Below, one piece after another: positions 12,726-53,767 of a stretch of DNA of 56,042 nt. Origin of the DNA: Gekko japonicus. Its lineage: Eukaryota. The position numbers and the translations under genes were made by a program. The stretch covers positions 284,049 to 340,090 of the forward strand of contig NW_015173123.1 of the NCBI RefSeq assembly GCF_001447785.1, read 5' to 3'. Positions within the stretch are counted from its first letter, which is position 1. Every line of letters begins with the position of its first letter. The notes below the pieces were generated by a model, which worked only from the letters and a program-made list of their open reading frames with translations, was not told the DNA's origin and made no database searches.

Positions 12726-13521
12726 TTCCTTCCTTTCTTCCTTCCCACCACCACCATTTAGTTGTTAGTTCCCATCAGGCAACCAGCCTGGAAGCCGACA
12801 GGCCCCCCGGCCCCACAGAGTTTGCAATCTGAAAACTGGCACAAGAAAACCAACTAAGAGAGGTGAAGGATGAACTCGGGAGGGATCGGGGCGCATCCTT
12901 TGCACACAGACTGCTGTTTCTGTAGGGAAGGGGCCACATGCCAGAGGCTTCACGGGAATGGTGGCTTTTGAGGAGCAGCTGGGAGGGAGAGAGAGAAGGG
13001 GCATCCTGCAGGAAGCAGTGCCAGGCCTGGGGGGAAGCAGGGGGGGGGAAGGTGGGGGCGCCGAAGGGGCTGCAGCCGGAAGAGCTGACGGGTGGGGAGA
13101 AGAGACTGGGATATGAGAGCAGAGGGAGAAGCGGGGGAGGGCTGGGCTTTGTTGCAGGTCAACTGCGGAGGAGCCGTGGCTCAGGGGCAGAGCATCTGCT
13201 TGGCATGCAGAAGCCTCCTGGCTCAAACCCCAACGGCATCGCCTGTTCAAATGACCTTACGGGCTGGGAAAAATCTCTTCCTGCGCAAGACTCTGGAGAG
13301 CAGCGGCCAGTCAGAGCACACATTTCTGGCTCCAGGGAGCAAAAGCCTGACTCAGCATAAGACAGTTTTGCACGGCTTTGACAGATTTTGTGTGCTGCCA
13401 TGCGCATCTGGTTACAAACAGGATGGGGGGGAGAGACAAGCGTTTCTCTCCCCCCCCAATCCCATTTTAACCACATGCTCGTGGCAGCAAGGAAAGACCC
13501 GCTTACCAGCCTGGCGCTCAC

Positions 13522-18954: not shown

Positions 18955-21900
18955 GACAGCAGCAGGGAAGGAGGGCGGGTGGTGTGAATGCACAGATGAC
19001 CACTCGAAGATCACCAGTTACTGGTAAGCAACCTGCTTATCTTCGACGTGGTCTCTGTGCTTCACACCCATGGGAGATTAGCGAGCAGTGGCCTACCTGG
19101 AGGAGGGTGCTGGCAGGTCCTTTACTGCGTAGCCGAAGATAGAATGTGACGGCCCATGCTGGTATTGGTGTTCATACGGACGTCTAGGGCGTAGTGCCTG
19201 ATGAAGGTGTTAGGCGTGGCCCACGTAGCAGCTTTGCAAATGTCCATCAGTGGCACTCCCTGGAGGAAGGCAGTGGAAGTCGCAACAACCCTGGTCGAAT
19301 GAGCCCTGATAGGGCCAGGCAATGGCTGTTTGGCGATCAGGTAACATAGACGGATGAGACCCACAATCCACTTTGACAGGCGCTGAGCTGTGATGCGAGT
19401 ACCCAGCTGTGCTGATGCGTAAGAGACAAACAGTTGTGAGTCTCATCTCGTTGGGTGTGTTCTACTGAGGTAGAACAGGAGAGCCCGCTTCACATCTAAA
19501 GTGTGTAATAGTTTGTCTTCTGGTGATGTTGAATTTGGGGGAAAATTAGGGAGGAAGACCTCTGCCTGCAGGTGGAACTCTGACATCACCTTCGGCAGGA
19601 AGGAGATGTCCGGGACGAGGCGGACTCCGTCCGGGACGAGGCGGACTCCGTCCGGGACGAGGCGGACTCCGTCCGGCAAAAACGACAGGTAAGGTGTATT
19701 GTGCTGGAAAGCCAATATTTCTCCCACTCGTCTAGCTGATGTGACAGCAATTAAAAAGGCCGTTTTCCGTGCTAGAAGTTTGAGGTCGCATGTTGCAAGG
19801 GGTTCAAAGGGCTTCCTTGTGAGCTGGCGGAGAACTAGAGGAAGGTCCCAGGGAGCGACTGGAGTTTTCACAGGAGGATAGAGATGCAATAAACCTTTTT
19901 TAAAAGTTTTGAAATCGGATGGGAAAACAAAGTGCATTCGTCAACTGGAACATGGTAGGCCGAAAGAGCGGCCAAATAAACTCTCAACGATGAATGGGAA
20001 AGTCCCGAGTCAGCTAGGGAGAGGAGGAATTGGAAAACTCTTTCGAGACCCACTGAGGTGGCTTGAGGAGTGTCATCACCAAGGGAAGAACAGAACCTTC
20101 GCCATTTATAATTGTAGGACCTCCGCGTAGTAGGTTTCCTAGAGTTCAAGAGAACGTTCACTACGCGGGTGAAGTCGGTTACATTATTCTCCATGCCGTC
20201 AGTTTCAGTTGTAGTATGTCGTGATGTAGGAGGGGGGAGTCAGAGAGGAGGAGGAGGTCTTGAGCCAGAGGAAATTGATGGTATATCACTTCTGATAACT
20301 CGAGGACTGTTGAAAACCAAGGTTGTCTCGGCCACCATGGGGTTATTAAGATGCAGTCCGCGGCGTCTCTGAGTATTTTGCGGACCACTCTCAGAAGCAG
20401 AGGTAAGGGAGGGAATAGGTAAAGAAGTCCCGTGGACCAAGGGAAAAGGAGACCGTCTCCCAGAGATTGTGGGTCCCTGCCTCCTCGACTGCAGAACAGA
20501 GGACACTTTTTGTTGTTTTTGGTGGCAAAGACATCGACTTGGGGAGCTCCCCACTTGTGGAAGAGTGGGAGGAGGTATGCTGGGTTCATCCCCCACTCGT
20601 GAAGGCTGAGTCCTGCTCGACTTAGATGGTCTGCCTGCACGTTCATGTGTCCGGGAATGTGAGTGGCTGCGAGGAAAATGTTGTTGGCGATGCAAAGCTC
20701 CCACAACTGGACGGCAAGGTTGCAGAGGTGTAGAGAAACAGTGTTTCCCTGTCTGTTGACATAAGAAAGGGCCGTGGTGTTGTCCGTGAGGACCGTGACA
20801 CATTTTCCCTTGATTAAAGGTAGGAAGCTGGTGACAGCGTGTTGTATAGCCAGGAATTTGAGGAAGTTTATGTGTCACTTCCTCATCTGCGCGTCCCATT
20901 TGTCTCCAACGGAATGGCCCATGGAGTGTGCACCCCATCCTGTCAAGGAAGCATCTGTCATTATGGTGACTTCGGGTGACGGAGGATGGAAGGGTGCTCC
21001 CTGGAGGATATTCGAAGGGGCAGTCCACCAAAGTCTCGTAAGCTGGGAAGAGGGGATAGGAGGACGATGTTTGCGTTTTTCGACAGATCGTAGTTGCGGA
21101 TAAACCAGAGCTGTAAAGGGCGCATTTTGAGTCTAGCAAAGACAAGAACCGACGTAGTTGCAGCCATCAGGCCAAGCAGCCTCTGAATTTGGAAGGCAGT
21201 GATGGAGGGTTGGGTACGGACAACGGTGGCTAAGGAAATGATATCTGCCGCCCTGTTGTGGGGCAGGTAAGCCATGCATGTCGTGGAATCCAGTATAGCA
21301 CCAATGTACTGTATTCTCTGGACCGGGCAGGATTGAGACTTTTGTTGATTGACCTGTAGGCCTAGATTCTCCAATAGTGCCAGAGTCTCTGTGATGTTTG
21401 AGACCAGGGCGTTCTTGGAAGGCGCTACCAGAAGCCAATCGTCGATATATGGGTAGATGGAGACACCCCGGAGATGGAGGAAGGCTGCAACCACAATCAT
21501 AGTCTTTGTGAAGACTCTTGGGGCGCTGGACAGGCCGAATGGAAGGGCCGTATACTGGTAATGATGTTGACTAATTGCAAAATATTGGCGGTGGGCGGGG
21601 TGGATGGTAAGGTGGAAGTACGCGTCATGGAGGTCGAGGGTGGCCATCCAGACGTGTCTCCGAAGCAATAGCATGATCTGTTGTAGAGACACCATGCGGA
21701 AGTGGTGGTAGGTCACAAAACGGTTCAGTTCCCTTAGATCTAATATGGGTTGAACGCCTCCATCTTGCTTCGGGACTGTGAAGTACCGGGAATAAAACCC
21801 CGTCCCGTGGAGATGTGGTGGTACATGTTTGATGTCTCCCTTCTGCAGAAGGACGGACACCTCCTCTAGGAGAGGTGGGGAAGGGTGTGTGGAGACGATG

Positions 21901-24449
21901 ACAGGAGTATTGGGGTTCTGGTGCAACTGGATTTGGTAGCCTCGGGTCAAGACGGATAGCACCCACTCGTCCGAGGTGATGTGACGCCAAGTGTGAAGAA
22001 AAGGTGACAAGACAGGTTTGAGCTGACTCGGTGACTGGGAAATCAAAAACCCTGCTTGGAGGGTTTGGTTTGTTTGGTGCGGGAAGATTGTTGCCTGGAA
22101 CCGAATCTTGGTTTCTGGAAGGTGGATTTTTGGCCTCCCGAAGATGTTCACGGTCTCCATTGTGCGTCCGGAGACTGACGAGTTGGGGTACGCCTCTGCC
22201 AGGATCTGAACCAGGTGCAGGACGGTATGGTTGCCTCGCAGAGGATGACACTCCTAGAGCTCGAGAAGTTTTTATTGCTTTTATCTAATTCCTGTAAAGT
22301 AGAATCAGTAGTGGCATTGAAAAGTCCCAGGCCATCAAATGGAAGGTTTTCCACATAAGATCTAGTATCCATAGGCAGATTAGTATTGCGGAGCCAGGAA
22401 TGTCTCCTGAGAGCTATTGCAGAGGCCATCGTTCTGGAGGATGCCTCAAGGACATGCTTAGTAGTGTTGAGCTGTTGTTTTGCCAACACCATGCCTTCCT
22501 TTTGGATGACTCTGGCTGCCTGGAGTTTGTCTTCTGGGAGGTGGGCCAGAAGTTCGGAGAACCNNNNNNNNNNNNNNNNNNNNNNNNNNNNNNNNNNNNN
22601 NNNNNNNNNNNNNNNNNNNNNNNNNNNNNNNNNNNNNNNNNNNNNNNNNNNNNNNNNNNNNNNNNNNNNNNNNNNNNNNNNNNNNNNNNNNNNNNNNNNN
22701 NNNNNNNNNNNNNNNNNNNNNNNNNNNNNNNNNNNNNNNNNNNNNNNNNNNNNNNNNNNNNNNNNNNNNNNNNNNNNNNNNNNNNNNNNNNNNNNNNNNN
22801 NNNNNNNNNNNNNNNNNNNNNNNNNNNNNNNNNNNNNNNNNNNNNNNNNNNNNNNNNNNNNNNNNNNNNNNNNNNNNNNNNNNNNNNNNNNNNNNNNNNN
22901 NNNNNNNNNNNNNNNNNNNNNNNNNNNNNNNNNNNNNNNNNNNNNNNNNNNNNNNNNNNNNNNNNNNNNNNNNNNNNNNNNNNNNNNNNNNNNNNNNNNN
23001 NNNNNNNNNNNNNNNNNNNNNNNNNNNNNNNNNNNNNNNNNNNNNNNNNNNNNNNNNNNNNNNNNNNNNNNNNNNNNNNNNNNNNNNNNNNNNNNNNNNN
23101 NNNNNNNNNNCCAGGGTCTCCGTGATGTTTGAGACCAGGGCATTCTTGGACGGCGCTACCAGAAGCCAATCGTCTATGTATGGATAGATGGAAACTCCCC
23201 AGAGACGGAGGAAAGCCGCAACCACAATCATAGTCTTTGTGAAGACCCTTGGGGCGCTGGATAGGCCGAATGGAAGGGCCGTATATTGGTAGTGCTGTTG
23301 ACCAATCGCAAAGCGTAGGTATTGGCGGTGGAAGGGGTGGATAGTAAAGTGGAAATATGCGTCTTGGAGGTCGAGGGTGGCCATCCAGACGTGTCTCCGA
23401 AGCAATGGCATGATCTGTTGTAGGGATACCATGCGGAAGTGGTGGTAGGTCACAAAACGGTTCAGTTCCCTTAGATCTAATATGGGTCGAACGCCTCCAT
23501 CTCTCTTCGGGACTGTGAAGTATCGGGAATAAAATCCCGTCCCTTGGAGGTGTGGTGGTACCTGTTCGATGGCTCCCTTCTGCAGAAGGACGGACACCTC
23601 CTCGAGGAGAGGTGGGGAAAGGGGCTTGGAGACAACGACAGGAATATTGGGGTTCTGGTGGAACTGAATTTTGTAACCTCGGGTCAAGATGGACAACACC
23701 CACTCGTCCGAGGTGATGAGACACCAGGCATGAAGAAAGGGAAACAGATGGGTAGGAGCTGACTTGGTGACAGGGAAGTCATAAACCCAGCTTGGAGGGT
23801 TTCGACTGTTTGGTGCGGAAAGCTTGTTGGCCTGAACTGATTTTTGGTTTCTGAAAAGCAGGTCTTTGGCCTCCCAAAGACACTTGTGGTCTCCATCGTG
23901 TGTCTGGAGACTGATGAGTTGGTATATGCCTCTGCCAGGACCTCGACCAGGTGCGGGAACGGTATTGTTGTTTTGCAGAGGAAGAGACTTCTAGAGCTCG
24001 AGAAGCTTTTATGCTTTTGTCTAACTCTTGTAGAGTAGTATCTGTGGTAGCATTGAAAAGCCCCAGGCCATCAAAAGGGAGATCTTCTAAGATCTAGTAT
24101 CTATCGGGAGATTAGTGTTGCGGAGCCAGGAATGTCTTCTGAGAGCTATTGCAGAAGCCATTGTCCTTGAAGACGCCTCGAGGACATGTTTAGTAGTGTT
24201 GAGCTGTGAGGTTGAGCTAACAGCGAACCGATCAGACTGATGAAGAAGAGGTCTACTCAACGCGGCGGTAAGAAAGGAACTGGTGGGATGTCCGCACCCA
24301 CCCCTCTAGGCATGCAGGGTGGGGTTCCTGCGCATGCCTGAGGGACTGGGCGTGAAAATCCGTTAAAAGAGCTTGCTACAGCACCGATCGATCCAGCGCG
24401 TGCGCACTAGATCCCATGGGTGTGAAGCACAGAGACCAGGTCGAAGATC
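18955..24449 (-). mobile_element. DIRS1-type tyrosine-recombinase retrotransposon (gag, RT/RNaseH/MT, YR), frameshifted; gag-RT region present twice across an N-gap
   Basis: YR at 19122-20194 (TSARRVGE, RAHSTR, TFIRHY); RH/MT at 20179-20706 (HIPGHMNVQADHLSR, YLFPP, PWWPRQPW); RT at 20961-22160 and 23111-23699 (LDLQDAYFH, ALPFGLSSAPRVF, YPYIDDWL); terminal sequence at 24412-24449 is the reverse complement of 19038-19075. Confidence 0.92.
19608..19676. repeat. 21-bp tandem repeat x3.3 inside the DIRS recombinase
   Basis: (gtccgggacgaggcggactcc)x3; in-frame (PDGVRLV)x3. Confidence 0.95.
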
Positions 24450-32103: not shown

Positions 32104-33524
32104 NNNNNNNNNNNNNNNNNNNNNNNNNNNNNNNNNNNNNNNNNNNNNNNNNNNNNNNNNNNNNNNNNNNNNNNNNNNNNNNNNNNNNNNNNNNNNNNNN
32201 NNNNNNNNNNNNNNNNNNNNNNNNNNNNNNNNNNNNNNNNNNNNNNNNNNNNNNNNNNNNNNNNNNNNNNNNNNNNNNNNNNNNNNNNNNNNNNNNNNNN
32301 NNNNNNNNNNNNNNNNNNNNNNNNNNNNNNNNNNNNNNNNNNNNNNNNNNNNNNNNNNNNNNNNNNNNNNNNNNNNNNNNNNNNNNNNNNNNNNNNNNNN
32401 NNNNNNNNNNNNNNNNNNNNNNNNNNNNNNNNNNNNNNNNNNNNNNNNNNNNNNNNNNNNNNNNNNNNNNNNNNNNNNNNNNNNNNNNNNNNNNNNNNNN
32501 NNNNNNNNNNNNNNNNNNNNNNNNNNNNNNNNNNNNNNNNNNNNNNNNNNNNNNNNNNNNNNNNNNNNNNNNNNNNNNNNNNNNNNNNNNNNNNNNNNNN
32601 NNNNNNNNNNNNNNNNNNNNNNNNNNNNNNNNNNNNNNNNNNNNNNNNNNNNNNNNNNNNNNNNNNNNNNNNNNNNNNNNNNNNNNNNNNNNNNNNNNNN
32701 NNNNNNNNNNNNNNNNNNNNNNNNNNNNNNNNNNNNNNNNNNNNNNNNNNNNNNNNNNNNNNNNNNNNNNNNNNNNNNNNNNNNNNNNNNNNNNNNNNNN
32801 NNNNNNNNNNNNNNNNNNNNNNNNNNNNNNNNNNNNNNNNNNNNNNNNNNNNNNNNNNNNNNNNNNNNNNNNNNNNNNNNNNNNNNNNNNNNNNNNNNNN
32901 NNNNNNNNNNNNNNNNNNNNNNNNNNNNNNNNNNNNNNNNNNNNNNNNNNNNNNNNNNNNNNNNNNNNNNNNNNNNNNNNGAGTCCCGGGGGGGGGGGTC
33001 GGGCCCGCTTCTTCCTCCTCCTCCTCCTCCGCCGCGCAGGGGGTGGGAAGAACCCGCCAGGTCCCTCTGGAGGCACAGCGGGGAAGCGGCCCGCGAAGGG
33101 AGCCTCCGGGGTCACGGCCGGGGCTCCGGTCTGGCTTTGCCGCTAGAGGGTTTGGGGGGTTTTGCTGCCACATCTCAGCCAGTTTATGAGGTTTTCAAAC
33201 CCAGGTTAAGATCCCCCCCCCCTCCACCAAGGATGGCTCTGATGCAGTTATTCTCTCCCCGCCTAGGCTGGCTCCCTCACGGAGCTGTCAAGATAAAACG
33301 GGGAGGGGGAGCCATCTACAGCCACCATGAGGTCCCTGAAAAACGCATGGCAATAAAACGTTGGAAAAAAACCCCAAACTGTTACTGTGGATGCCCCTAA
33401 ATGAACTGAATATTTTCCCATGGAGCACTAGGACAGAGCGCTGCCTTCGCTGTGTCCTTCCAGGTTATGTTTTGATCTTTTTTATATCTCACGCTTTTGC
33501 ACAGGCGTCTGAAAGGTGTCCACT

Positions 33525-33651
33525 ATGTCCAAAGGCATTCTGGGGGAAGCCGGTCTCCATTTTGATGAGCTGAATAAACTGAGGGTTTTGGACCCAGAGG
33601 TGTCTCAGCAAACAGCCGAGCTGAAAGAAGAATGCAAAGCGTTCGTGGACA
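33525..33651 (+). CDS. IFT20: IFT20 coding exon 1
   Basis: [42 protein letters not shown]; 127 nt; donor gtaagt. Not listed in the ORF track. Confidence 0.95.
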
Positions 33652-34286
33652 GTAAGTTCTCTCCCTCAGCCAGTGTCCTTCATGCTTTGTGACTGTAAGA
33701 GCAGCCATACTGGATCACGGGAGCCGTCTGTGTAATCCGGCATCAATCAGGTGCCTGCCGGGAGGTCCCGATGGAGGCACGGAAGCCAGAGCCTCCCTCT
33801 TTTGCGGCGTCACAGCTCAGTAGAACCTCCACATCTAGAGGAAGTTTACCATCACTGTCCAGAAGAAGTTTGTCCTCCACAATATAGTGGGAAGGGGTGG
33901 GTAGACCTGTTCTCCAGAGGCCAGGTCTACCAATGTAGTGGGAAGGGGCGGGTAGACTGCTGCCTCTATGTCTGGCTTGAGGGATTCTGCAGGGCCATCT
34001 GTCTGGCTGTTGTGTGATACTGGCCTGGTGGGACTGGTGGTCTCTCCAAACGAGGCTGGTGTTTTGTTATGAACCCATCAGCGGTTCCTGGGAAGGAGCT
34101 GTGGCTCTGTGGTGGAGCACCTGCTTGGCATGCCGGGGACAGTGAGAGCAGGAGGCTGATCCCAGGCGTCGTCAGGGGATGGATCGCGGGCAGTGGAGAT
34201 GGGGAAAGGCCTTTCTCTGCCTGAGGCCCCGTCCTAATAAACTCAGCTGCACAGAATATAAATATCGTTTTCTGCCTCTTTTACAG

Positions 34287-34372
34287 AAATCGCAGAATTT
34301 AAAAAAACTGTGGGTAGCTTCATTGAGCTGGTTGATCAACAAGCAAAAGCAGCGGAAAATGAGAAGATTAAG
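34287..34372 (+). CDS. IFT20: IFT20 coding exon 2
   Basis: 86 nt, ttacag| ... |gtaact; (K)IAEFKKTVGSFIELVDQQAKAAENEKIK. Confidence 0.93.
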
Positions 34373-34717
34373 GTAACTAGCCCTGAGTGTCAACACCCCA
34401 GTTTGCCTTTTCCCAGGAAAACAGGGGGTTCCCAGGAGCCTGGCCTGCTGCTAGAGCTAAGCTGAACATTGGCCCTGGAATCCTCTTGCACCATGTCAGC
34501 AAGAGGCAGATATAAGAGACTTCAAGAATTTGTAAGGCTACAATGCAGAGTTGGTTCCTCAGTTAAGCATCTGTTAACAGATTAAAAGGTTCCCCATATA
34601 ACTGGGCAGTAGATTTAATCACCAGTTATTTGTCTTATTGACTGAATTTTTATCCCAAAGGAATTCAGAGCGATTCACCCTTCCCTTTTATCCCCACAAC
34701 CCTGTGAGGTAGTTCCA

Positions 34718-35190
34718 GGTGGTCAGCCGTGTCGGTGTGAAGCAGTAGAACAAATTTAGAGTCCAGTGGCACCTTTAAGACCAACAAAGGTTTATTCAAG
34801 GTATGAACTTTCGTGTGCGTAGACTTAACAGCATTTTGTTAAGTTACCTCCATGCCTGAGAGGAGACAAATGGAGAGTCTCAGTTTATTTCCCACAATTA
34901 GAAAAGATACCTTTACACATTTATCTCCTATTTTAACATATTTAGCGCTTTACTGTTTTCCCTCCACGTCACTAAATCAAATCAACCTTAGCTTGTTATT
35001 TAGTTTTGTCTTCATATATCTTAAAACATCTTCATCGTGTGACATGTTAATTTGCTGTTCAGCCTCTGTCTATATGTTTGAATTCTTACCTTCCATTCCA
35101 ATGTATTTGAAAAAGTGTGCCTGCACACCAAAGCTCATACCTTGAGTAACCCTTTGTTGATCTTAAAGGTGCCCCCCCCCCCGGCTGGAC
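34718..35190. mobile_element. Penelope-like non-autonomous element with inverted pseudo-LTR ends
   Basis: gcacctttaagaccaacaaaggtttattcaaggtatgaactttcgtgtgc (~34770-34818) is inverted relative to gcacaccaaagctcataccttgagtaaccctttgttgatcttaaaggtgc (~35123-35172). Confidence 0.6.
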
Positions 35191-35725
35191 CCTGTTTCCT
35201 GCGAGATAGATTAGATTGACTGTGTGTGACTGGCACAAGTTCAGCTAGCAAGATTCCTGACCAATATGGAGACTTGAATCCAGGTTCTAGTCCAACATTC
35301 TTACCCTTACCATGCAATTTTTAATGTACATGATGTACAAAAATCTTTTTGATTGCATTGTTTCGGTTGGTGGCTTGTTAAAAAAAGACATGGAGTCAAT
35401 GAATAAATAAATCTAAAGCGATTATGGGTGTTCCTCCTTCTCCCAAATGCAAAATAGAATGACTTCACTTTCTTAGGAGGCAGGTCCCTCTCCTCTCAGA
35501 CTCAGCAGGGAATATGCCTCTTCTGAAATGATGCCTTCTCTGATGCATGCATTATCTTTAAAAAAATGCTCTTTTCCACAACCGTGAAAATATATGCAGA
35601 TTTGAAGGTCATAGGATTGTCTCGTTAATTTAGTAATACTCCTAATTATATTGTTACTCCCTTGGGACAATTGCTACAAAACCAAACATGTTGAACCTAA
35701 GGACCCCCCCCCCCTTTTCCCACAG

Positions 35726-35829
35726 GCAATAGGGGCCCGAAACTTGCTGAAATCGATCACAAAGCAGAGAGAGGCTCAGCAGCAGCAGCTTCAGGCTCTG
35801 ATAGCTGAGAAGACAACCCAACTGGAAAG
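35726..35829 (+). CDS. IFT20: IFT20 coding exon 3
   Basis: 104 nt, ccacag| ... |gtgagg; [34 protein letters not shown](R). Confidence 0.96.
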
Positions 35830-36367
35830 GTGAGGAGGGGCCTGAGGGTCGGGTGGAAGAAGTCCTCAAGCTCATTTTTGATAAGTCCCCCCTGTGCAGT
35901 CCTACTCAACTCCTACCCCCCCCCCCCAGTTCTGGCGTACCGGGTGAGCTAACAGCCAGATTCTTTGCCTGGCCAAGGAGTGGCTCCCAAGTTGCAGCCA
36001 GCCTTCCGTGCCCTGTCCAACTCTGAGGAAGCAGACGGAGAATCACGGCAGTGGTTCAAGAGTCCAAAGCTGCTTCCAAGCTCCGTCATAACCGGTATCC
36101 ACCTCCAAGCGGAGGAGCCAAGGCCGAAAGCCTGCCCTTGCTGCTGCCCTCCGCCAAGGGCTCTGCTGCCTCCACACGGAGCAGCTCCTCTTGGGCACCA
36201 CAGCTGATAGCGACTGATGGGCTTCTCCTCCTTGGATGTTGTCTAATCTCCTTTTACATCCATTAGTATGCCTGAAATAAACAACGAGTTCCCTCTGCAG
36301 TTATTCGTCTCCCCTGCTCAGAGTCGCTGTCAATGCAGCCTGCTGTCATGTCCCGTCCCCCCCACAG

Positions 36368-36449
36368 GTTTCGTGTGGAATACGAAACACTTTGCAAAAC
36401 AGAAGTGGACCAGAATGAATTCATCGACCAGTTCATATTCCAGAAATAA
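36368..36449 (+). CDS. IFT20: IFT20 coding exon 4 (stop)
   Basis: 82 nt; [26 protein letters not shown]; total CDS 399 nt (132 aa); AATAAA signals at ~36739-36752. Confidence 0.95.
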
Positions 36450-38692
36450 AAAGAAGCAAAAATCAACAACAATACACTGGGAAAACTTGAACCATTCCAG
36501 CACCCTGATGGTTCCACAAGGAGCCATTTCCAGTGGTCATGAAATGACCCCAGGGTCACACCTAGGAAGGCGGACAATTCAGAGCTTCACTGTCAAATTA
36601 TTTCCATAGAGGGAGGAAGAATTATCCTAGTTTTAAAGATTTTTTTTGACAGCTTGAAATATCCAGACCATGTTGCTGCAGTTGATATTGCTCCTGAACA
36701 TTGGGGGATTTTTTAAAAAATGTGACAGAATTCAGGGAAATAAAGAAATAAATGTTTTTAGAAATGCCCAGTTTCTTTTCAAATGAGACCCGGAAGGTGT
36801 CACTTGGAATTCCTACTCTGGGACACACTCAACTGCATCCTTTCGCTCTGGAGTCACTGCCCTCTCCCCTTTTTCTGGAGCCACGCCATTCACCGATTCT
36901 TCTCTGCCAGTAGGAGTCTCGAATGCGTCTCCATTCCTGTTTTGTACCAGCCTTTGCCTTTGGGAGTGCCTTGCAGGATGTTTCCGTGTCAGTGGAGATG
37001 GAGCTGTCCTTTCCCTGGCTTCGGTCCCCTTTTGGGTCATGGGCAGGCAACGGATGGCTCGAATGCAGAAAAGTGGCACTCTAAAGCTGTTCGCCCAGCA
37101 ACAACAGGGCTGGCTCTTCAGCCAAGAAGTCTAGGGTTTGGCAGTGCTGATGAGGCCACAAGCACGGGGAAGGGTGAAGAGCGTAGCTTATGTCTCTCCA
37201 GTAAACCCACAGGGCTTCCACTGGGCCCAAAGCAGCATCAGGGGATTCAGCTTGCGCTCCGGGTGTCCCACCTGAAGCTGAAAACACCCCCCCCCCTTAC
37301 ATTGTGTTGAGTGGGGATCAGGTGCATGTCCTCTCTTGTTCACATGAGCCCCTGTGCATGGATGAGGCCACCAGGCAGGCAGCAGCTCCTGGGGCATACT
37401 TCAAACTGTTAGAGAATGAACTTGATATTTTACTTTATGAACTATATTTATTGCTTCACACAATGAACTGTGCACACACAAACACAGGCTCAGAGAACTG
37501 TACACTCCAAGTCACCTGTTGTGATGCAACACATAGGTGCCTGCACAAGCCTTACATGTGGAATGAGGTTTCCGTTACACAGTTGACAGCCTGGTGAAGG
37601 AGCACACACCTCCATTATTGTGAGCAGTAAGAAACAGCAGCTTTGAGAAGAGACAGACCCCATTGCAGATGTCGTTGTGATCACGTACAATACAGCCATG
37701 CTTTGTTCTACTTTAGTATTTCCTGCCAAATGGACATTTGTTTCACAAAGATGGCCAGCTTCATCTACACTTCAAGGAAGCATCCTGACGCCAGGGTTTC
37801 ACACCTGCCCAGATGTCCTTCCTTGAGTAAGGTATTAGATTTCAATATTGACCACTCCTTTAGGCAACCTCCCACTCCTATAGGCAACCAATAGGATTGT
37901 TTTTGGGACGGGCTAACAGGAAGGTGGGCCAGGAGGTTGGCACCGTCAACACCCATCTCCTGGATCTCCGATAAAAGAAGAGAACCAGTCACATGGTCTC
38001 TCTCTCTCCTACTTGATCAACTAGCATCTCCCCTGCAACAACCCGTCTGCTTTTTACTACTCTTAAGTCCCACTTGCTATCCCCAAACCCTTGCCTCTAC
38101 TGCCCACACATTCTGGCTGGTTGTGTGTGAATTTCCTTAGTTTTCCATTTCTTCCCCTCTATTCTTCATTGGAACAACCAAAGTAGCGAAGACAGATAAG
38201 TATAGCCCATCATCACCCTACCTAATGCAACTGTATTTCTAAGGAACTTGATTGAATGTGTGAGTGCATCAGTATTGTTTGTATGAGATTTATTTTCTTA
38301 AGTAAAAGACATTTATTTTAACAACACCAGCCTCGACTCCTTCTCTGGTAACCCTTGGTGGGAACAAGACCTTGGTATAGTTGACAAGAACCAGTTTATA
38401 AATTGCCAATTGCTGTAAATAAAGCAATTCGGCTAACAAAACGGCTGGTAAACCATTTCAGATTCTTGGTGGAGACTCCTTGAAGACTGACAGAGGGCAA
38501 AAGGGAAAAGTCAGCCCTCCCCCCTCCAGTTTGCCATTCCCTTTTGGCCCAGGAAATAAATACATACCGATAGGCAGAAGAAAAGTCCTTCTTGCACAGA
38601 TCACAACTCCCTTGGTTGAAAGAACTCTCATTCTTTATTCTCTTTACCCACCATATGGTTACAGACTACAGCAGAAGATACAGGATGTGCAG

Positions 38693-38698
38693 TTTATT
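38693..38698 (-). terminator. Candidate polyadenylation signal for the NCBP2-like gene
   Basis: AATAAA on the minus strand about 370 nt after the stop codon. Confidence 0.45.
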
Positions 38699-39067: not shown

Positions 39068-39166
39068 CTAGTAGATCACCGTCTGTTGATTCAACTTCTG
39101 CATCTGAATAATCTTGCCAAAGCCACCTCTCCCAACATCATAGTCTGTCCGGTATTCATCCCGAAT
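39068..39166 (-). CDS. NCBP2 (CBP20)-like exon 4 (stop)
   Basis: 99 nt; acceptor tttgtag|; [32 protein letters not shown]. Confidence 0.92.
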
Positions 39167-39471
39167 CTACAAAGGAAGAAAAACGAGATAAAAACAGAGA
39201 GCAACGAAGGTACAGGAACGTGCCCAGAACGATCAATCTTAGTTGGTGTCACAAGGGTTTTTTAAACCTCACCAAAGCCACAGGATGATATGGATGATAA
39301 CCTGGAATTTTTAATAATGAATTTGTCCAAGCTCAAATTGACACTGCTTTAAAACTACGGTTCCCAACAAACTGGAGAAAAGTGCCCTATTCCTTTCGCA
39401 GAAGTTTAATGAGTAGACATGAGTGGTGGAAACTTTTCATGGCATGCAGGCAAGTGACTTCACCTAGTAAA

Positions 39472-40091
39472 CTGTTGTAGTTCAGTCGCAACCCCGTGGA
39501 CCACATCACGCCAGGCCCTCCTGTCTTCCGTCGTCCTCCGGAATTTGCTCAATTTCACGTTCATTGCATCGATAACACTGTCTGACCATCTCATCCTTTG
39601 CCGTCCCCTTCTTCTTTGACCTTCAATCTTTCCCAGCATCAGGGTCTTCTCCAGTGAGTGCTCCCTGCTCATTGGGTGGCCAAAGTATTTGAGCTTCAGT
39701 TTCATTATCTGGCCTCCCAGGGAACAGAAAGGGTTGATTTCTTTTAGGATTGACTGATTTGATCTCCTTGCAGCCCAAGGGGCTCTCCTCCAACACCATA
39801 ATTCAAAAGAATCTATTATTTGGCACTTGGCCTTCCTTATAGTCCAACTCTCCCAGCCATACATGACTACTGGGAATACCATCGCTTTGACCACGACTTT
39901 TGTTGGCAGGGTAATGTCTCTGCTTTGTATTATGCTGTCTAGGTTTGCCATCACTTTCCTCCCAAGGAGCAGGCGTCTTTTAATTCCATGGCTGCCGTCA
40001 CTGTCTGCAGTGATCCTGGATCCGAGGAACGTGAAGTCTGTCACTGCTCCCACGACTTCGCCTTCTGCTTGCCAAGGAGTGATGGGGCCAG
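39472..40091 (-). mobile_element. RTE-BovB LINE 3' fragment in NCBP2-like intron 3
   Basis: FTFLGSRIT..IKRRLLLGRK..VFPVVMYGWESWT..LMLGKIEGQRRRGRQRMRW. Confidence 0.92.
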
Positions 40092-40415
40092 CCGAAGGAA
40101 CAGAACATTTTCCAGCAGGCTGTCGACAAGCCGACTTTAAATTCCCCTGATACAGTTCTGCAGCGGAGAGGGTTCACTCTTTGGCCTGGAAGAACTAGGA
40201 CTCACAGCCATGTCATTGCACCCTCTTGTTTCTGGTGCAGCATCCAACCCAGGTATTCCTTCTCACTGGATGTGCTGCACCAGCTGGACATTCACTGGCA
40301 TACCTTAGTAGGCAGCCCCAGCCTGAGCACGGGGGGCACAGCAAATATCCACACCAAAATCAGGCCCAGCCCAGCGCAATATCTCCAAGCATCCCACAAA
40401 CCTTATGCTCCTTAC

Positions 40416-40554
40416 CTGGCCACCGGTCTTCCCACGGCCATACTGCCGTCCTTCCGTGAACCCGGTATCCCAGTCTGTTCGGATCACGCGGTCATCCAGC
40501 CGGGTTCCGTTGATGAACCGCATAGAATGCTCAGCATCCGTTCTTGTGTAGTAT
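40416..40554 (-). CDS. NCBP2-like exon 3
   Basis: 139 nt, ctccag| ... |gtaagg; (E)[46 protein letters not shown]. Confidence 0.94.
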
Positions 40555-42601
40555 CTGGAGCGTTACTATAAGGAAAGACTCAGAGGACCATTTGACGAGC
40601 TGATGCTGGCTGGCCCCAAGGTAAAGAGAAGACAGGAAGAAAACTGGAGGTCTCCAAGGCTCCCAACCCCCAATAAAAAGTGAAGTAGTTCACAGCGTTA
40701 TCACCATTTGGAGAATACTAAGCGCAGTATAATGCTGAAGCTAAGCAAGTCTCTCAGCCCGGTCAGTAGGAAACGACTTCAATATCCAGTTTTACAGGAG
40801 GGATGCAGCCAGAATAAGTCACCAGATTCAAGTTCAATAAATCTTTACTTAAACATGCTAGTTCATGGGTGGCCAAACTAGTTCATGGGTGGCCATATGC
40901 AGCTCTTGGAGCTCGGAAACTTGCCACCCCCCTGCATTCCCCCCCCTTTGAAAGCCACTCCCTTCCCCTCCCCTGCCTCCTGCTGCTGGAAGAGAGTGCA
41001 GAAAAGAGAGGAGGAGAAGCAGCAGTCGTCCCAGCCGCCAGGGGAGGGATCAGCTAAGAGAGCCACCGGGCACGTTTCTGTGCGCCCTGCTCGTCGCCAG
41101 GCTACATGGTTGCCTTACCCCCCTCCATGTGCATGGGGTAACCCTAACCCTACATGGGCGTTAAACAGGAACGTGGCAAAAGGCTCTTCATGGGCCTCTT
41201 GCTGCCAGCGCCATGGGTGGTGGTGGTGTAAGGGATGCTCTGTTAGGGGGAGGGGGCCCCCCGCCAGGGTACACGGTTGCCTTCCCCCCCTCCATTTACA
41301 GTGTGATGCATATCTCAACTACAATATCCAAATATAATATAATTTGCCACTGAATAATTCTGCTCCCATTCTCTATGGACTTAATCCTCAATTTGTAATA
41401 GTTGGCTGAGCATCCTAAAACCTCCTAACAAACAGGACATTAAAAAAGTTATTAAATTCAGCTGTAGTATGGATACAGTTAACAGCTGGATTTTGTAATT
41501 TTGTAAAAGCTATATATACAAATTGATTTTCCTATATCATAGGATTCTTTGAAGTAACATTATTTATTTATATATTCTTTGGGTTAAAATTTGAAAAGAA
41601 AAAAATACATACACCTTAGTGTTTTTTAAATAAAAGTAGTCTTCATTAGTCTACAGTGTCATATTGATACAGTTTTCTGGTTGTATCTTATTGAACCGTG
41701 ACCCCTCCTGTGGTTGAAGACACAGCTGATGTACACCAAATGCCCTGGTGGGTCACAATCAGCCAAAGCGCCCCCCCCACACACACACACAGAGTAGCCT
41801 TGCATGCCCTGTGGAACTGGGGAAGGAAGGTCCCGCAAGGCACGCACCTCTTCAGGCAGCTGGTTCCACGGGACAGGAGTCACTAGTGAGAAGGCCCTCA
41901 CCCTTCTTGACACAAGGTGGAAAGTTCTTGGACCAGGGACCTTCAATAAATGCCAAGGTGAAGACTGGAGACGATGGGGAGGATCATGTCGGTATGAGGG
42001 TCCCAGGCCATTTAGGGCTTTAAAGGACAGTACCAACACTTTGAATTGGCACTGTTGCTTGGAGTGTGTCCATGGGACCATATCACTCCAGTCTTGTTCC
42101 ACCTATACTGGCTTACAGTTTGCTTCTGGCTCAATTCAAGATGCAGGTTTTGACCTTTGAAGCCCTGTTGGCCCTGGGACCCACATGCCTTAAGGACTGC
42201 CTTCTCCCATATGGACCTACCCACTCACTCTGATCATCCTTGGAGGCCCTGCCATCTGAGACTGGACAGGCGCCAACCTGGAATGGGCCTTTTTTGTCAT
42301 GGCACCAAAACGCTGGGACTCCCGCCCCAGGGAGATTTATCTCCTTCTCTCTCTCTCTTGTCTTTTGTGAGCAGCTGAAGACTTGCGTTTGCTCTGGCAT
42401 ACCCCAATAATGGTTTTTGGCCCTCCTTCTAGTGTTGTTTATTTATGTGTTTTTGATTGAATTTTAAATTCTAAACGGTACCTTAACTGCTTAAATGTTT
42501 CTATGTTCAGCACCTTGAGGACCCCAACTGGGTGGAAAGGCAGCATTAAAGTTTTAAATAATAATAACAAGTAGTTCATTCAATCCAAAGGCCAAGGATA
42601 C
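40555..42601 (-). other. U12-type (minor spliceosome) GT-AG intron
   Basis: 5' site GTATCCTT; branch-like TTTCCTTATAG shortly upstream of the CAG acceptor, with no long polypyrimidine tract. Confidence 0.85.
41730..42560. mobile_element. Two L2-type 3' remnants in opposite orientation
   Basis: Minus-strand FKVLVLSFKALNGLGPSY..RAFS..PWNQLP (41800-42050); the analogous plus-strand piece (42100-42560) ends in an AT-rich tail. Confidence 0.6.
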
Positions 42602-42783
42602 TCCACAAAGCAGAAGCCACAAGGGGTTTTCTTCACCCTGTCCAGGCCCATGACGATGCGCTTGACATCCCCACACTTGGAAAAGAGCTCATGGATTTGC
42701 TCCTCGGTGGTGTAGAAGGACAGGTTGCCCACGTAGAGGGTGGTGGAGTTCTTCAGGGATTTCAGCCGCTGGTCCCGGATGCC
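42602..42783 (-). CDS. NCBP2-like exon 2 (RRM)
   Basis: 182 nt, cctcag| ... |gtatcc; [60 protein letters not shown](E). Confidence 0.95.
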
Positions 42784-43261
42784 CTGAGGGAGGGAGGGGG
42801 GTGGACCGCGTGCCACAGACTTTCCATTCGCAGCATCATTTAACACCCAAAGCAGACATAACCCAGGGGGCGACCCGGGTCAGAAACGCCGGCCATGGCG
42901 AGGGGGGGGGGGGGGGGGGGGGGGGGTGACCCTTTGCCGGCCTCCGTCTTTCAGTCCCGCAGAAGCCAAACGGGTGAGGGCCCCGAGACGTCTCCTGGCG
43001 CTCCCGCCTGGCGCCATTCCCCAGGAAGGCCAGGGCACGAGGCCGCCCGAGGGAGACGCCTGGCCAGGCAGGCAGGCAAGGGGCGCCCCGCAGCCCCGAG
43101 GGGAGGGGCGCCCCCCAGGCGCCCTCACGCCGACCCGGCCCCGCCTTCCCCGCGCGAGGGGCCCGGCAGCACGTCCCGCCCGGGAGCGCCGGACGAAGGC
43201 CCTCCGAGAGGCCCGCCCGTCCGTCCGTCCCCCCGGAGGGCGCCCCCGCCCGCCCGCCCAC

Positions 43262-43348
43262 CTTGAAGCGCTGGTCCCAGTAGTCGCCGATCTCGCAGTA
43301 CGAGTCGCTGCTCAGGCCCCGCAGCGTCGTGCTCAGGACGGCCGACAT
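43262..43348 (-). CDS. NCBP2-like exon 1 (start)
   Basis: ATG at 43348 in context GCCGAGATG; MSAVLSTTLRGLSSDSYCEIGDYWDQRFK; donor gtgggc. Confidence 0.9.
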
Positions 43349-43616
43349 CTCGGCCCTCCGCCTCCGCGCCACGCACGCGCGCCCGAGCGGCTCACTGGCC
43401 CCGCCCCCTCCGGCGTCACACCGCGAGGCCCGAGAAGAGCCAATCCGGGGTCGCCTCCCGCGCAGGGGCGGGTCGCTTTGTCGCAGGGCATGCTGGGAGC
43501 CGTAGTCCCCCCTCGCCTTCTCGGGGAATCAGGGGCGGGGCCCGCCGGCGCCCAGAGGGCCGGGGGGGGGGGGTGTCCTCGCTGCTGCCTCCCCTTATCC
43601 CCCCCCCCCCCCCCCT
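43349..43616 (-). promoter_or_regulatory. CpG-island promoter of the NCBP2-like gene
   Basis: GC boxes; CCAAT (~43440); ZNF143 SBS GGACTACGGCTCCCAGCATGCCC on the minus strand at ~43486-43508. Confidence 0.75.
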
Positions 43617-43701
43617 NNNNNNNNNNNNNNNNNNNNNNNNNNNNNNNNNNNNNNNNNNNNNNNNNNNNNNNNNNNNNNNNNNNNNNNNNNNNNNNNNNNN
43701 N

Positions 43702-46531: not shown

Positions 46532-49500
46532 ACTGTCCCTCATGGATCATTGCCTTGACGTGGTGAGGGGGTTTGTGTGGTTCGATGAGGCTGTGAGCTA
46601 TGCCGTGGAGGGCCACCCAGGACAGACAGGCCACAGCAGAGAACTCAGACAAAGCGTGATCCACTGGAGAAGGAAATGGCAACTGTAACGATTTCATGTT
46701 TATTTGTGTGTGTGTCTTTAAAAGTTTGGTTGGTATGGCTGTGATGATACTCTAGAGTGCTGGAAACAGGCAAGTGATATGATTGGTGAGTGACAGAGAG
46801 GGGGAGGGGTTTTGGAATGGATGCTGTGTGGATGATTTGAATGTCTATCAGGAGTGTCTGTTAGGAGATATGACTGTTGATGCAGACAGTGGAAGTTAGT
46901 TAAGCAGTTTTGTCCTGAGGTCTCTGTGAGAGACGTTTTTCTGTGTGGAATATAAGAGTAAAAGTCTCTGTGTTAAGCAGACGGTTAAGTTCTGTGTAAG
47001 AGAGGAGAGACCCATCCCTGTGTAGGACNNNNNNNNNNNNNNNNNNNNNNNNNNNNNNNNNNNNNNNNNNNNNNNNNNNNNNNNNNNNNNNNNNNNNNNN
47101 NNNNNNNNNNNNNNNNNNNNNNNNNNNNNNNNNNNNNNNNNNNNNNNNNNNNNNNNNNNNNNNNNNNNNNNNNNNNNNNNNNNNNNNNNNNNAAAGTTAT
47201 ATGCATAAATCCCTGAGAGATAACTGAAAGTGCTGTGCCATGACAGTGTGAGAGAGAAAGGAGCTTATATCTGTAAAGTGAATCTACAGTTCTTAAAAAG
47301 AGTCAAAGTTACAAAGAGTGTGATACAGTTGACCTAAAGTACTTACAAATACCTATTTCCAAAACAGTTACAGTTTAAACAACTTCTTACTCTGTTCTTC
47401 AAATAAATCCTTTTTATTTAAGTTTATCCCAGAAGCCTGATCCATTTTTCCTCAGGAAACACATAGTTCCTCGAAAGCCCAGACCCTGGGTCACAATACC
47501 AAAACCAGAAGAAGAAAGTATAAAGGTTTGGAAAGCCTAAAATTTCCTGGTGGCAGCCAGATTACCCAGTAGAGCAAAATATAAAGAACGGTTTAAAGTA
47601 AAACCAGACCTCCCCAGAGAAGAGGTCGTCACAGCAACCCACTCCAGTATCTTTGCCAAGGAAACCCCATGGACAGCAACAAAAGGCTAAAAGATATGAC
47701 GGCGGAAGATGAGCCCCTCAGGTTGGAAGCTGTCCAATATGCTACTGGGGAAGAGCAGAGGGCAAGTATAAGTAACCCCAGAACGAGTGAGGCGGCTGGG
47801 GCAAAGCCCAAAGGACGGTCAGCTGTGGATGTGTCTGACGGTGAAAGGAAAGTCCGATGCTGCAAAGAGTAATACTGCATAGGAACCTGGAATGTAAGAT
47901 CTATGAATCAAGGGAAGCTTGATGTGGTCAAAAATGAGTTGGCAAGACTGAACATCGACATCTTGGGAATCAGTGAACTAAAGTAGATGGTAATGGGCAG
48001 ATTTAACTTAGAAGACCATTATATCTACTACTGTAGCCAAGAATCCCATAGAAAAAATGGTGTGGCCTTTACAGTCAACAAAGGAGTGCAGAAGGCAGTA
48101 ATGGGATACAATCTCAAAAATGACAGAATGATCTCGGTCCGAATTCAAGGCATCCTCATCATAGGGGACTGTAATGCTAACGTAGGAAGACAAAAGGTAA
48201 CCAGAATAACAGACAAGTTTGGCCTTGGAGAACAAAATGAAGCAGGGCAAAGGCTAACAGAGTTTTGTGAAGAGAACACGCTGGTCATAGCGAACACCCT
48301 CTTCCAACAACCTAAGAGGCGACTCTACACGTGGACATCACCAGGTGGGCAACACCGAAATCAGATTGACTATATCATTTGCAGTCAAAGATGGAGAAGC
48401 TCTATCCAGTCAGTAAAAACAAGACCTGGAGCTGACTGTGGCTCAGATCATGAGCTACTCATTGCAAAATTCAGACTTAAACTGAAGAAAGTTGGGAAAA
48501 CCACTAGACCATTGAGGTTTGACCTAGATCGCATCCCTGATAAATATACAGTGGAGGTGAAGAATAGGTTTAAGGGACTAGATTTGATAGACAGAGTGCC
48601 TGAAGAACTATGGACGGAGGTTTGTGACATTGTACAGGAGGCAGCAATCAGCACCATCCCAAAGAAAAAGAAATGCAAGAAAGCATCTGATGAGGTTTTA
48701 CAAATAGCAAAGGAAAGAAGGAAAGCGAAAGGCAAAGGTGAAAAGGAAAGATTTACCCAACTGAATGCAGATTTCCAGAGAACAGCAAGGAGAAATAAGG
48801 AGGCTTTCCTGAATGAACAATGCAAAGTAATAGAAGAAAACAATAGAATGGGAAGGACTAGAGAGGTCTTCAAGAAAATTGGAGAAATCAAGGGAACTTT
48901 TCCATGCAAAGCTGGCCATGATAAAGGACAAAAACAGTAGGGACCTAACAGAAGCAGAAGAGATTAGGAAAAGATGGCAAGAATACACAGAAGAACAATA
49001 CAAGAAGGACCTCAATGTCCTTGACAACCACGATGGTGTAATCACTGCCCTTAAGCCAGATATCCTGGAATGCAACGTCAAATGGGCCTTAGAAAGCATT
49101 ACTAACAACAAAGCTAGTGGAGGTGATGGTATCCCAGCTGAGTTACAAGTCCTTAAAGAGATGGGAGTACCAGACCACCTCACATGTCTCTTGAGAAACC
49201 TGTATAAGGGTCAAGATATGGAACACCTGATTGGTTTAGCATCGGAAAAGGAGTAGGACAAGGATGTATATTGTCACCTTGCCGGCCTGGATGAATCACA
49301 AATGGGAATTAAGATTGCTGGGGAAAACATCAACAACCTCCGATATGCAGACAATACCACTCTAATGACAGAAAGTGAAGAGGACTTAGAGCGTATTGCT
49401 GAGGGTCAAAGAGGAGAGCGCAAAAGTTGGCTTGAAACTCAACATCACAAAAACTAAGATCATGGCATCCGGCCCCATCACTCCTTGGCAAATGTGGAAG

Positions 49501-51200: not shown

Positions 51201-51416
51201 CCACTTTCCTGGGGCCATTCCAGGGGCAGCCTGCATACAAGCCATGGCTGGAGACATCTTGGGACGGGTGGTGGTGGTGGGGATGAATGGAAGCAGGAAC
51301 CGGCTGAGGGAATAAACGAGGTTGCTGTGTGACTCACACAACTAGCCGATGAGTGGGAGAAAGGCGGGGGGTATAAATGGAGTAAATACATTTTCTGACC
51401 TTTTGTGTCCCCTCAG

Positions 51417-51561
51417 CTGACAGACTTGCTCAAGTGGTACACGACTTCATTCAAGGACCCCTTGATGGCACAGTGCCCTGCTTGGTTTCAGTCGTTCGTC
51501 TACTGTGAAGTCTTCCTGCAACTGCCTTTCTTTCCTGTGGCGGCTTATGCATTCTGGAAAG
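51417..51561 (+). CDS. TMEM97: TMEM97 exon 2
   Basis: 145 nt, cctcag| ... |gttcgt; [48 protein letters not shown](G). Exon 3 was not found in the window. Confidence 0.94.
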
Positions 51562-53767
51562 GTTCGTGCACAAGGTTGGATGGATGGGGTAGCTCTGTTC
51601 CTGGCCCTAGGAGAAAGCCCTGCCTGTTCCCCCCAACACAGCAAGCAGTAGCCACTTGTTTCCAGGCATGTGAAAAGCCCAGCTGTGAGCTGTGGTCAGC
51701 CCAGGCATTGGGGGTTCCTCTCCTCCTCGGCTGCAGTGGTCTTAGAAAAGTGCCACTTCCTGCTTCCTTTTGGAAGGAATGGCCCTGTCAAGAGGGAGGG
51801 CCCTGAATCTGGCCCCTGCACCCTGTGTGCACTGATCTCCTGGGCTCAGGGTCCAACATCCTGGATAGCTGAATTTTTAAACGCTTGTTTCTAGTCCATC
51901 TGGATGCCAATCTCCACTGGGTGGGAGCACAGGTGGAAGCAAGGATGATGATATTTCAGTAACGAGGGAAGGTGGGAAGAACACCTGGGCTGCTTCAATG
52001 CAGCAGGAAGGGGGTATCCATGGTGGTCGTGATGAATGATCTCTCTAATCTGTCAACGGCGGTGAGCAAAAATTGTGAGCCAAAAAATCTACGAGGCTAA
52101 AAGTTGTGAGCGAGCCTGAATTTTTTTAAATTTAAATTTACAAACATACAAAACACAAGTGGAAACCCACAAGAAACTTGTGGGATGGTTATCCCATTCC
52201 TCACACCTTTCCTTCCTCCCCTCTCCCCCTACCTCTCTGACACTCTTTCTCCCTTCCGCCCCTCCTTTCTTAATCTCTCTCTCTCCCCTCCATGGATGTT
52301 ACTTCCTCTCTCTTTCTGACCTGTTGTTTTTCCGCCTCCCTACCTCATCACTGTTTCTCTCTCTTTCTGTCCCCATCACTCTCTGCCCCCATCACTCTCC
52401 CAGCCTCCGGCCTGCTTCCTCTTCCCCCCAGAACAGCAGTGGCAGCACTCTGGGAATCACAGTGGATCTCCCAGCTACAGTGATCAATTCAGCTTAGGGC
52501 TGCCAGCTGCAGTTTGGGATATTCCTGCAGATTTGGGAGTGGAGCCTTGGGACAGTGAGGCTTGGGGAGGCAAGCCGCCTCAGCAGGGTATAATGCCACA
52601 AACCTCCTGGTGTGGAGGGTGGAGTCTGTGGCATCATACTGGTCTGTAGTTCCTTCCCTCCTCAAATCCCACCCTCCCCAGGATCCACCCCTCAAATGTC
52701 CAGGAATTTCCCAGCTTGGAGTTGGCAGCACAATTTCCTTCCCACCCAGCAGCCAACCTCTCTGTCTTCAGCTGTCCGTCTCCACGCTCCTCCCCCACAG
52801 CCTTTACCTAGGAAAATTACAGTCTTTCTCCACACTGGGGACCAAAGCAGCTTCCATTATTCTCACCTCCTTTTTATCTGCACAACAATCCCGTGAGGTT
52901 GGTTAGTGGGAAAGTATATGACTGGTCCAAAATCACCCAGTCAGCTTCCATTGCAAGATGGGGATTTGAACCTGGGTCCTGCAGACTCTACTTTGAAGCT
53001 CTAACTGCGGCACCTCACTGGCTTTCATAGGGTGGCTGCTGTTGAAGAGTAGCAAGGCCTAGTTGAGTCATGCAAGTCAGGTGGTATCAAGTCACCCAGA
53101 GGGTGCTGCCTAGGGATGCCAGCCTCCAGGTGGGACCTGGGGATCCCCTGGAATTACAGCTAATCTCCAGACTACAGAGATAACTTCACATGGAGAAAAT
53201 GGATGATTTAGAGGGTGGACTCTATAGCATTGTACCTGAGGTCCCTGTTCTCCCCAGGGTCCACCCCCAAACCTCCAGGAATTTCCTAGCCTGGATCTAG
53301 CAACCTGACACCCCCCGGTCCCCTGCCAGGGGCCAGGGGGGACCTGGCAACCTTAGACTGCTGCCAGGCCTCGGGTTGCAAACCTCCAAGTGGGACCTGG
53401 AGACCGCCCAGAATTACAACTGGACTCTAGACAGCAGAGATCTGTCTCCCTGGAGAAAATGGCTGCTTTGGAGGGTGGACTCTGGCATTGTACCCAGCTG
53501 AGGCCTCTCCCTTCCCCAAACCCAGCCCTCCCTAGAGTCCATCCCAAAATCTCTAGGAATTCCCCAGCCTGGCACTGGCAACCCTTGTCAAGCCTGGTCC
53601 CAAGGCTCCCTCCCTAAAAGGGCAAAATAGGCCTTTAAGACAGGTGCATCAAGTCAAAAGTCCAAACTGGGAAGGCATCTGCCTGAGACTAGGGAGAGTT
53701 CCTGCCAGCCATGGCAGATTTATTCATCATCATCATCAATCATCACTACTGTCACCACACTCATTAC

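Follow-up and report, generated by a model that had tools for sequence, protein, structure and literature searches.

An intact, intron-containing CBP20 gene of Gekko japonicus and its placement in a second lineage of vertebrate CBP20 genes

We analyzed a stretch of 56,042 nucleotides (nt) of Gekko japonicus DNA (NCBI RefSeq assembly GCF_001447785.1, contig NW_015173123.1, positions 284,049 to 340,090 of the forward strand), referred to below as the window; coordinates are positions within it. On its minus strand, between 39068 and 43348, lies an intact, intron-containing gene for CBP20 (NCBP2), the 20-kDa subunit of the nuclear cap-binding complex, in which the m7G cap is held between two tyrosines once the subunit has paired with CBP80/NCBP1. 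Vertebrate CBP20 sequences fall into two types, A and B, and sequence comparison places the window gene in type B, apart from the type A genes that include mammalian NCBP2. Overall, we consider it probable that the window gene is a working CBP20 of the old type B lineage, that squamates have no type A gene and run on duplicated type B genes, and that the window holds one of two gecko copies, designated G1.

Gene model and cap-contact residues

The gene has four coding exons of 87, 182, 139, and 99 nt, and every intron begins with GT and ends with AG, with pyrimidine-rich acceptors. Joined, the exons give 507 nt that read as 168 codons followed by TAG, with no internal stop, exactly as had been proposed in an earlier note made from the letters of the window. 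The parts of the gene are as follows.

Coding exon 1, 43262..43348, minus strand: 87 nt, with the ATG at 43348; N-terminal tail of 29 amino acids (aa) that carries the first cap-stacking Tyr and, after it, Trp
Intron 1, 42784..43261, minus strand: GT-AG, GC-rich, containing a run of 25 G
Coding exon 2, 42602..42783, minus strand: 182 nt; RNP2 and RNP1 of the RRM, preceded by the gecko-specific IRDQRL stretch
Intron 2, 40555..42601, minus strand: GT-AG, rich in repeats
Coding exon 3, 40416..40554, minus strand: 139 nt; completes the RRM and carries the cap-contact loop RTDWD
Intron 3, 39167..40415, minus strand: GT-AG, containing a 197-aa stop-free frame
Coding exon 4, 39068..39166, minus strand: 99 nt, TAG included; cap-contact residues of the C-terminus and the type B tail, ending in IY

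The run of G in intron 1 occupies 42902-42926, and intron 2 holds a perfect 20-bp tandem duplication at 40858-40895. The stop-free frame of intron 3 had no Pfam match and is probably a transposon remnant.

Database searches were run exon by exon, and the joined 168-aa model was used only for the frame check, the alignment, and the trees. The query for exon 2 was its 99-codon stop-free frame, which let full-length proteins pass the length filter. Exon 2 matched the Pfam family RRM_1 (E = 9.6e-12), and its RNP motifs, LYVGNL and CGFCFV, aligned with those of a single RRM. For exons 2 and 3, the top solved chain was human CBP20 (1h2t_Z; E = 3e-25 and 2e-21, respectively), the nearest solved chain that is not CBP20 being far weaker (E = 2e-13).

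Identity to the human protein had been put at ~72% by hand. Measured against dog type A NCBP2, it came to 69.5% (107 of 154 positions), somewhat below that estimate; the dog protein served as a stand-in for human, with which it agrees over the stretches of the human chain shown in the structure matches. Against a list of human cap-contact positions from structure papers, the window protein keeps the equivalents of Y20, Y43, F83, F85, R112, D114, W115, D116, R123, R127, Q133, R135, and Y138. It departs from human at R21, which is Trp beside the cap tyrosine, and at V134, which is Ile. These substitutions, the IRDQRL segment, and the long C-terminal tail were all seen in the alignment, as were the retained tyrosines and other contacts, in agreement with the earlier reading. 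The protein would be expected to pair with CBP80/NCBP1 and to bind the m7G cap between its two tyrosines.

Two lineages of vertebrate CBP20

The exon 2 search returned full-length 168-aa proteins from many squamates, led by Gekko kuhli (98%) and Paroedura picta (93%) over exon 2, and proteins of the same kind from birds, turtles, axolotl, a caecilian, and a lungfish. Two added searches, one with the lungfish protein and one with the canonical protein of a penguin, split the vertebrate sequences into types A and B. Type A comprises mammalian NCBP2, one bird, one turtle, and one salamander gene, and the genes of frogs, ray-finned fishes, and a skate. The window protein belongs to type B, together with all squamate matches, the second bird and turtle gene, and genes of alligator, salamanders, caecilians, and lungfish. 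One gene of each type was present in duck (XP_027320952 and XP_027324467), chicken, the snapping turtle Chelydra, and axolotl. In maximum-likelihood trees, the type B clade, with the window protein inside it, had support of 98/96 and 94/93, and the type A clade, including the skate and the ray-finned fishes, had support of 97/92 and 97/88. Because it is placed in the type B clade, apart from type A, the window gene is, on this phylogenetic evidence, not orthologous to mammalian NCBP2.

Because both types occur together in duck, chicken, snapping turtle, and axolotl, the split between them is old, and the sequences firmly place it no later than the common ancestor of lungfish and tetrapods. They also firmly indicate a duplication at the DNA level, because read-through gene models of both types break at the three intron positions of the window gene. 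A retrogene origin was ruled out by three GT-AG introns at the positions implied by those models. The view of this gene as an ancient DNA-level duplicate distinct from mammalian NCBP2 is thus upheld, with 94-98% support for the type B clade, coexistence with type A in four species, and intron positions in common. The maximum-likelihood topology sets the split before the gnathostome radiation; in approximately unbiased (AU) tests, a later duplication was not rejected, whether placed in the sarcopterygian stem (p = 0.076) or in the bony-vertebrate stem (p = 0.135). The CBP20 tree from which the earlier note had hoped to read the history of the gene therefore delivers a separate type B clade but not the timing of the duplication.

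A clean distinction between the types is found at only three alignment columns, 63, 80, and 149. Ser63 and Ala80 are the type A states; at these columns, Cys and Pro occur in type B, in hagfish, and in most of the sampled invertebrates, a hemichordate with Ser63 being an exception. At column 149, type B has Phe, in contrast to the Tyr of type A and the outgroups, the exception being the skate with Phe. The window protein has Cys63 and Pro80, not Ser63 and Ala80, and it bears the type B marks Cys16, Cys63, Pro80, Phe149, and the tail QMQK..Q..IY. A long tail with a terminal aromatic residue is found at the same length in fishes, skate, lamprey, and hagfish and was lost in tetrapod type A. The invertebrate-like appearance of KTPCGF, GKTGGQ, and RTDYD had been remarked upon before, and the alignment bears it out: in type B, these motifs and the long tail are, as judged from their occurrence in invertebrates and hagfish, retained ancestral states. 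Type B combines kept ancestral states (Cys63, Pro80, KTGGQ, RTDYD, and the long aromatic-ended tail) with states of its own (Cys16 and Phe149). The type B proteins of Hemicordylus and Chrysemys are 92.9% identical, a sign of constraint.

Human CBP20 (PDB 1H2T, 1N52, and others) resembles the window protein in having an RRM with N- and C-terminal extensions, the checked cap contacts, and the three intron positions, at the identity given above. It differs in being type A, with Ser63, Ala80, RQDYD, and a short tail, whereas the window protein has Cys63, Pro80, RTDYD, Phe149, a 14-residue tail past GFGK, and a gecko-specific Trp after the first cap tyrosine. Closer relatives are already on record. 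Annotations of the type B lineage exist for dozens of species, among them the Swiss-Prot entries NCBP2_CHICK (NP_001006430) and NCBP2_TAEGU, so that the lineage is not new to databases; the type A protein of chicken is NP_001264378. Both Swiss-Prot proteins share with the window protein the type B class, the length of 168 aa, and the tail pattern, and the duck type B protein, related to NCBP2_CHICK, is 79.8% identical to it. In bird type B, by contrast, the residue that follows the cap tyrosine is Arg rather than Trp, the helix segment has the conventional QEK form, and the gene, judged from contig size, lies on another chromosome; birds, unlike squamates in the listed matches, also keep a type A gene. 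Logan contigs only 937 and 1318 bp long contain full-length open reading frames of bird type B; from their length, they are probably spliced transcripts, provided that bird introns are comparable to those of the window gene.

In many species, NCBI labels the squamate protein "nuclear cap-binding protein subunit 2". The window copy itself seems to be unannotated in G. japonicus, because no database protein was flagged as the window's own. A literature search on two CBP20 lineages, squamate NCBP2 paralogs, or NCBP2L as such found no paper on type B, and NCBP2 is not mentioned in the main text of a paper on squamate gene loss (PMC13005343).

Type B genes of squamates and geckos

With a bird type A protein as the query, the squamate sequences among the matches listed were only type B, at 75-78% identity; frogs, fishes, and mammals ranked higher, and turtles were also among the matches. 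No squamate occurred among the ~125 listed members of nine type A clusters, in which turtles, salamanders, and marsupials were present, and matches to type A in Logan assemblies were mammal-like. In squamates with at least two CBP20 genes, all copies were type B. The two lacertid genes are on separate chromosome-sized contigs, Elgaria and Eublepharis each have two on one contig, Vipera latastei has two, and Rhineura floridana has four on one 39.4-Mb contig that form two pairs in the tree. From these sequences, it is quite likely that squamates lost type A, came to depend on type B alone, and duplicated type B repeatedly, and type A is probably absent from the G. japonicus genome. The expectation that a separate canonical NCBP2 accompanies the window gene is thus probably wrong: among the matches listed there was no squamate type A, and the partner copy in Gekko is type B.

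A wider picture, for and against which the chances seem about even, is one of reciprocal sorting. Mammals and frogs would have kept type A and squamates only type B, with independent re-duplication at least six times (in gekkotans, in lacertids, in Elgaria, in Rhineura with its four genes, and in Vipera); squamate "NCBP2" and the Swiss-Prot chicken NCBP2 would not be orthologs of human NCBP2, and human NCBP2L might be a type B leftover.

In a squamate-focused tree, gekkonid genes formed two groups. The G1 group contains the window gene, G. kuhli KAL8199277 (on a 51-Mb contig), and one gene each of Paroedura and Heteronotia (support 94/83); the G2 group contains G. japonicus XP_015264486, G. 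kuhli KAL8180751 (on an 83-Mb contig), and the remaining Paroedura and Heteronotia genes (support 95/88). Both co-occur in G. kuhli, Heteronotia, and Paroedura. By sequence, then, the window gene is a second CBP20 gene in Gekko, and its partner copy is another type B; gekkonids would hold two type B groups, with the G2 copy on a different chromosome from the G1 gene of the window. The G2 proteins (XP_015264486 and KAL8180751) resemble the window copy in type, length, the gecko Trp, and Thr120. They differ in belonging to a paralogous group, in lying on another chromosome-sized contig (83 versus 51 Mb in G. kuhli), and in the Gly of INGTR. This residue, invariant from Drosophila to human in the alignment, is Arg or Lys in G2 and is kept as Gly in the window copy. 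One Eublepharis copy has a G2-like replacement of the Gly, which suggests that the G1/G2 duplication is older than the eublepharid-gekkonid split.

The Trp that follows the first cap tyrosine occurs in Gekko, in Paroedura, in one Heteronotia copy (the other has Phe), and in one Eublepharis copy. The rewritten segment past exon 1 agrees with Paroedura at 12 of 14 residues and with turtle type B at only 6 of 14, and Ile in place of Val134 is lineage-specific in geckos. The R21W substitution and the changed helix, both listed in the earlier note, are changes of the gecko lineage and not traits of the old paralog. Changes private to the window copy are K123T and A95T.

Genomic setting and competing explanations

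The flanks of the gene and the remainder of the window contain the following features.

CpG-island promoter region, 43349..43616, minus strand: extends to an assembly gap
Inverted CCAAT box, 43440..43444, minus strand: 96 nt 5' of the ATG
ZNF143-like site (ACTACG..TCCCAGCATGC), 43488..43506, minus strand: 150-158 nt 5' of the ATG; a match to the consensus by sequence
Two AATAAA candidates, 38634..38698, minus strand: 369 and 428 nt past the stop codon
IFT20 neighbor, 33513..36446, plus strand: tail to tail with the CBP20 gene; stop-free segments with the first and last coding exons
TMEM97-like (EXPERA) exon, 51399..51803, plus strand: head to head with the CBP20 gene
Long interspersed nuclear element (LINE) endonuclease remnant, 47987-48940, plus strand: between the CBP20 promoter and TMEM97

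The predicted CpG, CCAAT, and ZNF143-like promoter elements and the poly(A) signal were all found again. GC content is 0.77 and the observed/expected CpG ratio 0.88 over the promoter stretch 43200-43616; a poly-C tract adjoins the assembly gap (43617-43701). The CpG-island promoter and the full set of intact cap contacts make broad expression as a cap-binding subunit the most likely role of G1, as far as sequence can tell. TNFAIP1-like BTB_2 exons also lie in the window on the minus strand, and the proposed neighborhood of TNFAIP1-like, IFT20, and TMEM97-like exons is thereby confirmed. Amid the TNFAIP1-like exons, a tRNA match at 13170-13241 (plus strand; 34.3 bits against an Rfam gathering threshold of 29) could be a tRNA gene or a tRNA-derived short interspersed nuclear element. 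Further retrotransposon remnants, of a class with reverse-transcriptase or LINE endonuclease domains, occupy stop-free frames at 3976-5226 (plus strand) and 20961-22160 (minus strand).

The neighbors of the window gene are thus IFT20 and a TMEM97-like gene, not those of the SENP5-PIGZ-DLG1 kind. Chicken type B lies on a contig of 90,861,225 bp and that of other birds on contigs of 19-24 Mb, sizes that we take to be those of chicken chromosome 4 and of 4A in other birds; for IFT20 and TNFAIP1 we assume chromosome 19 (~10 Mb). In turtles, types A and B share one contig, with locus tags 18 apart in Mauremys mutica, and a 500-aa chimeric model from that species (KAH1165571), in which type A CBP20 exons 1-3 are fused to DLG1-like PDZ domains, incidentally shows type A beside DLG1 in turtle. 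The axolotl genes are on different chromosome-sized contigs. From contig sizes and the presumed gene content of these chromosomes, the IFT20-TMEM97 position may be a secondary, lineage-specific relocation.

Possible, if doubtful, is the opposite history, in which IFT20-TMEM97 is the original home of type B in an ohnolog block, mammals lost the gene there, and the other gecko copy moved. The maximum-likelihood trees put type B outside the type A of skate, ray-finned fishes, and tetrapods, as expected of a pre-gnathostome duplication, and the separate axolotl contigs fit as well. However, the bird contigs (90.86 Mb in chicken, 19-24 Mb in others) have the presumed sizes of chromosomes 4 and 4A and not 19, turtles keep the two types on one contig, and the AU tests did not reject a later duplication and leave its date unfixed. 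The ohnolog that the earlier note had suggested, lost at this locus in mammals, is therefore not borne out, and the location hints do not favor IFT20-TMEM97 as the ancestral type B locus.

Location also bears on a human gene. We take the part of the human X chromosome that carries NCBP2L to match chicken 4p, where bird type B seems to sit. NCBP2L, which lies at Xq22.3 between FRMPD3 and PRPS1 (PMC10048180), is like the window gene a second CBP20-like gene in a vertebrate genome. As a lead from location, NCBP2L might have survived from type B instead of having arisen as a retrogene.

We consider it unlikely that the same gecko has a canonical type A NCBP2 as well and that the window gene is an accessory CBP20, part of an alternative cap-binding complex. 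Birds, turtles, and salamanders do keep both types, and annotation could have missed a type A gene if it lies in GC-rich sequence that is poorly assembled, bird type A models having GC-rich 5' ends. Nevertheless, neither the matches listed for the bird type A query nor the listed type A cluster members included a squamate type A, many chromosome-level squamate annotations yielded type B, and the lizards with two genes have both of type B. The alternative NCBP3-NCBP1 complex is an established case of NCBP1 with a further cap-binding partner, NCBP3 being unrelated in sequence to CBP20; for type B, the likeness is one of precedent and implies no functionally distinct complex.

A recently silenced or never-expressed duplicate with its frame still open would be compatible with the few private changes (K123T and A95T) but is highly improbable: frame, splice sites, and CpG-island promoter are intact, G. 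kuhli, Paroedura, and Heteronotia have retained orthologs, and the RRM part of exon 2 equals that of a cordylid lizard at 45 of 46 residues. That the gene is the sole, relocated, fast-evolving ortholog of mammalian NCBP2, as its NCBI naming as subunit 2 might suggest, was rejected as next to impossible, since it is contradicted by trees that group it with the second gene of birds, turtles, and salamanders and not with their type A, by Cys63 and Pro80 against the Ser63 and Ala80 of type A, and by the further type B copy of Gekko (XP_015264486).

Several points weigh against our preferred explanation, that of a working type B gene in a squamate without type A. The absence of type A was gauged from annotated proteomes, the matches listed, and partly listed 90% clusters; the location argument is built on contig sizes and on presumed sizes and gene content of chicken chromosomes; G1 and G2 are sisters with support of just 83/70; and gecko copies have both a Trp directly beside the cap-stacking Tyr and a rewritten segment past exon 1.

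Taken alone, the window gives a modest result: its CBP20 gene is intact and ordinary, and the lineage to which it belongs had been annotated before. CBP20 is usually treated as a single-copy, nearly invariant housekeeping protein with one name across vertebrates. If two lineages were sorted differently among vertebrate groups, cross-species comparisons of NCBP2 mix paralogs. Should squamates indeed run on type B, they would constitute a natural experiment in which type B can carry the whole of the cap-binding function, and the recurrent duplication of type B would be a hint of a lasting requirement for two CBP20 genes. These duplications, together with the gecko Trp, would then supply testable variants of cap binding.

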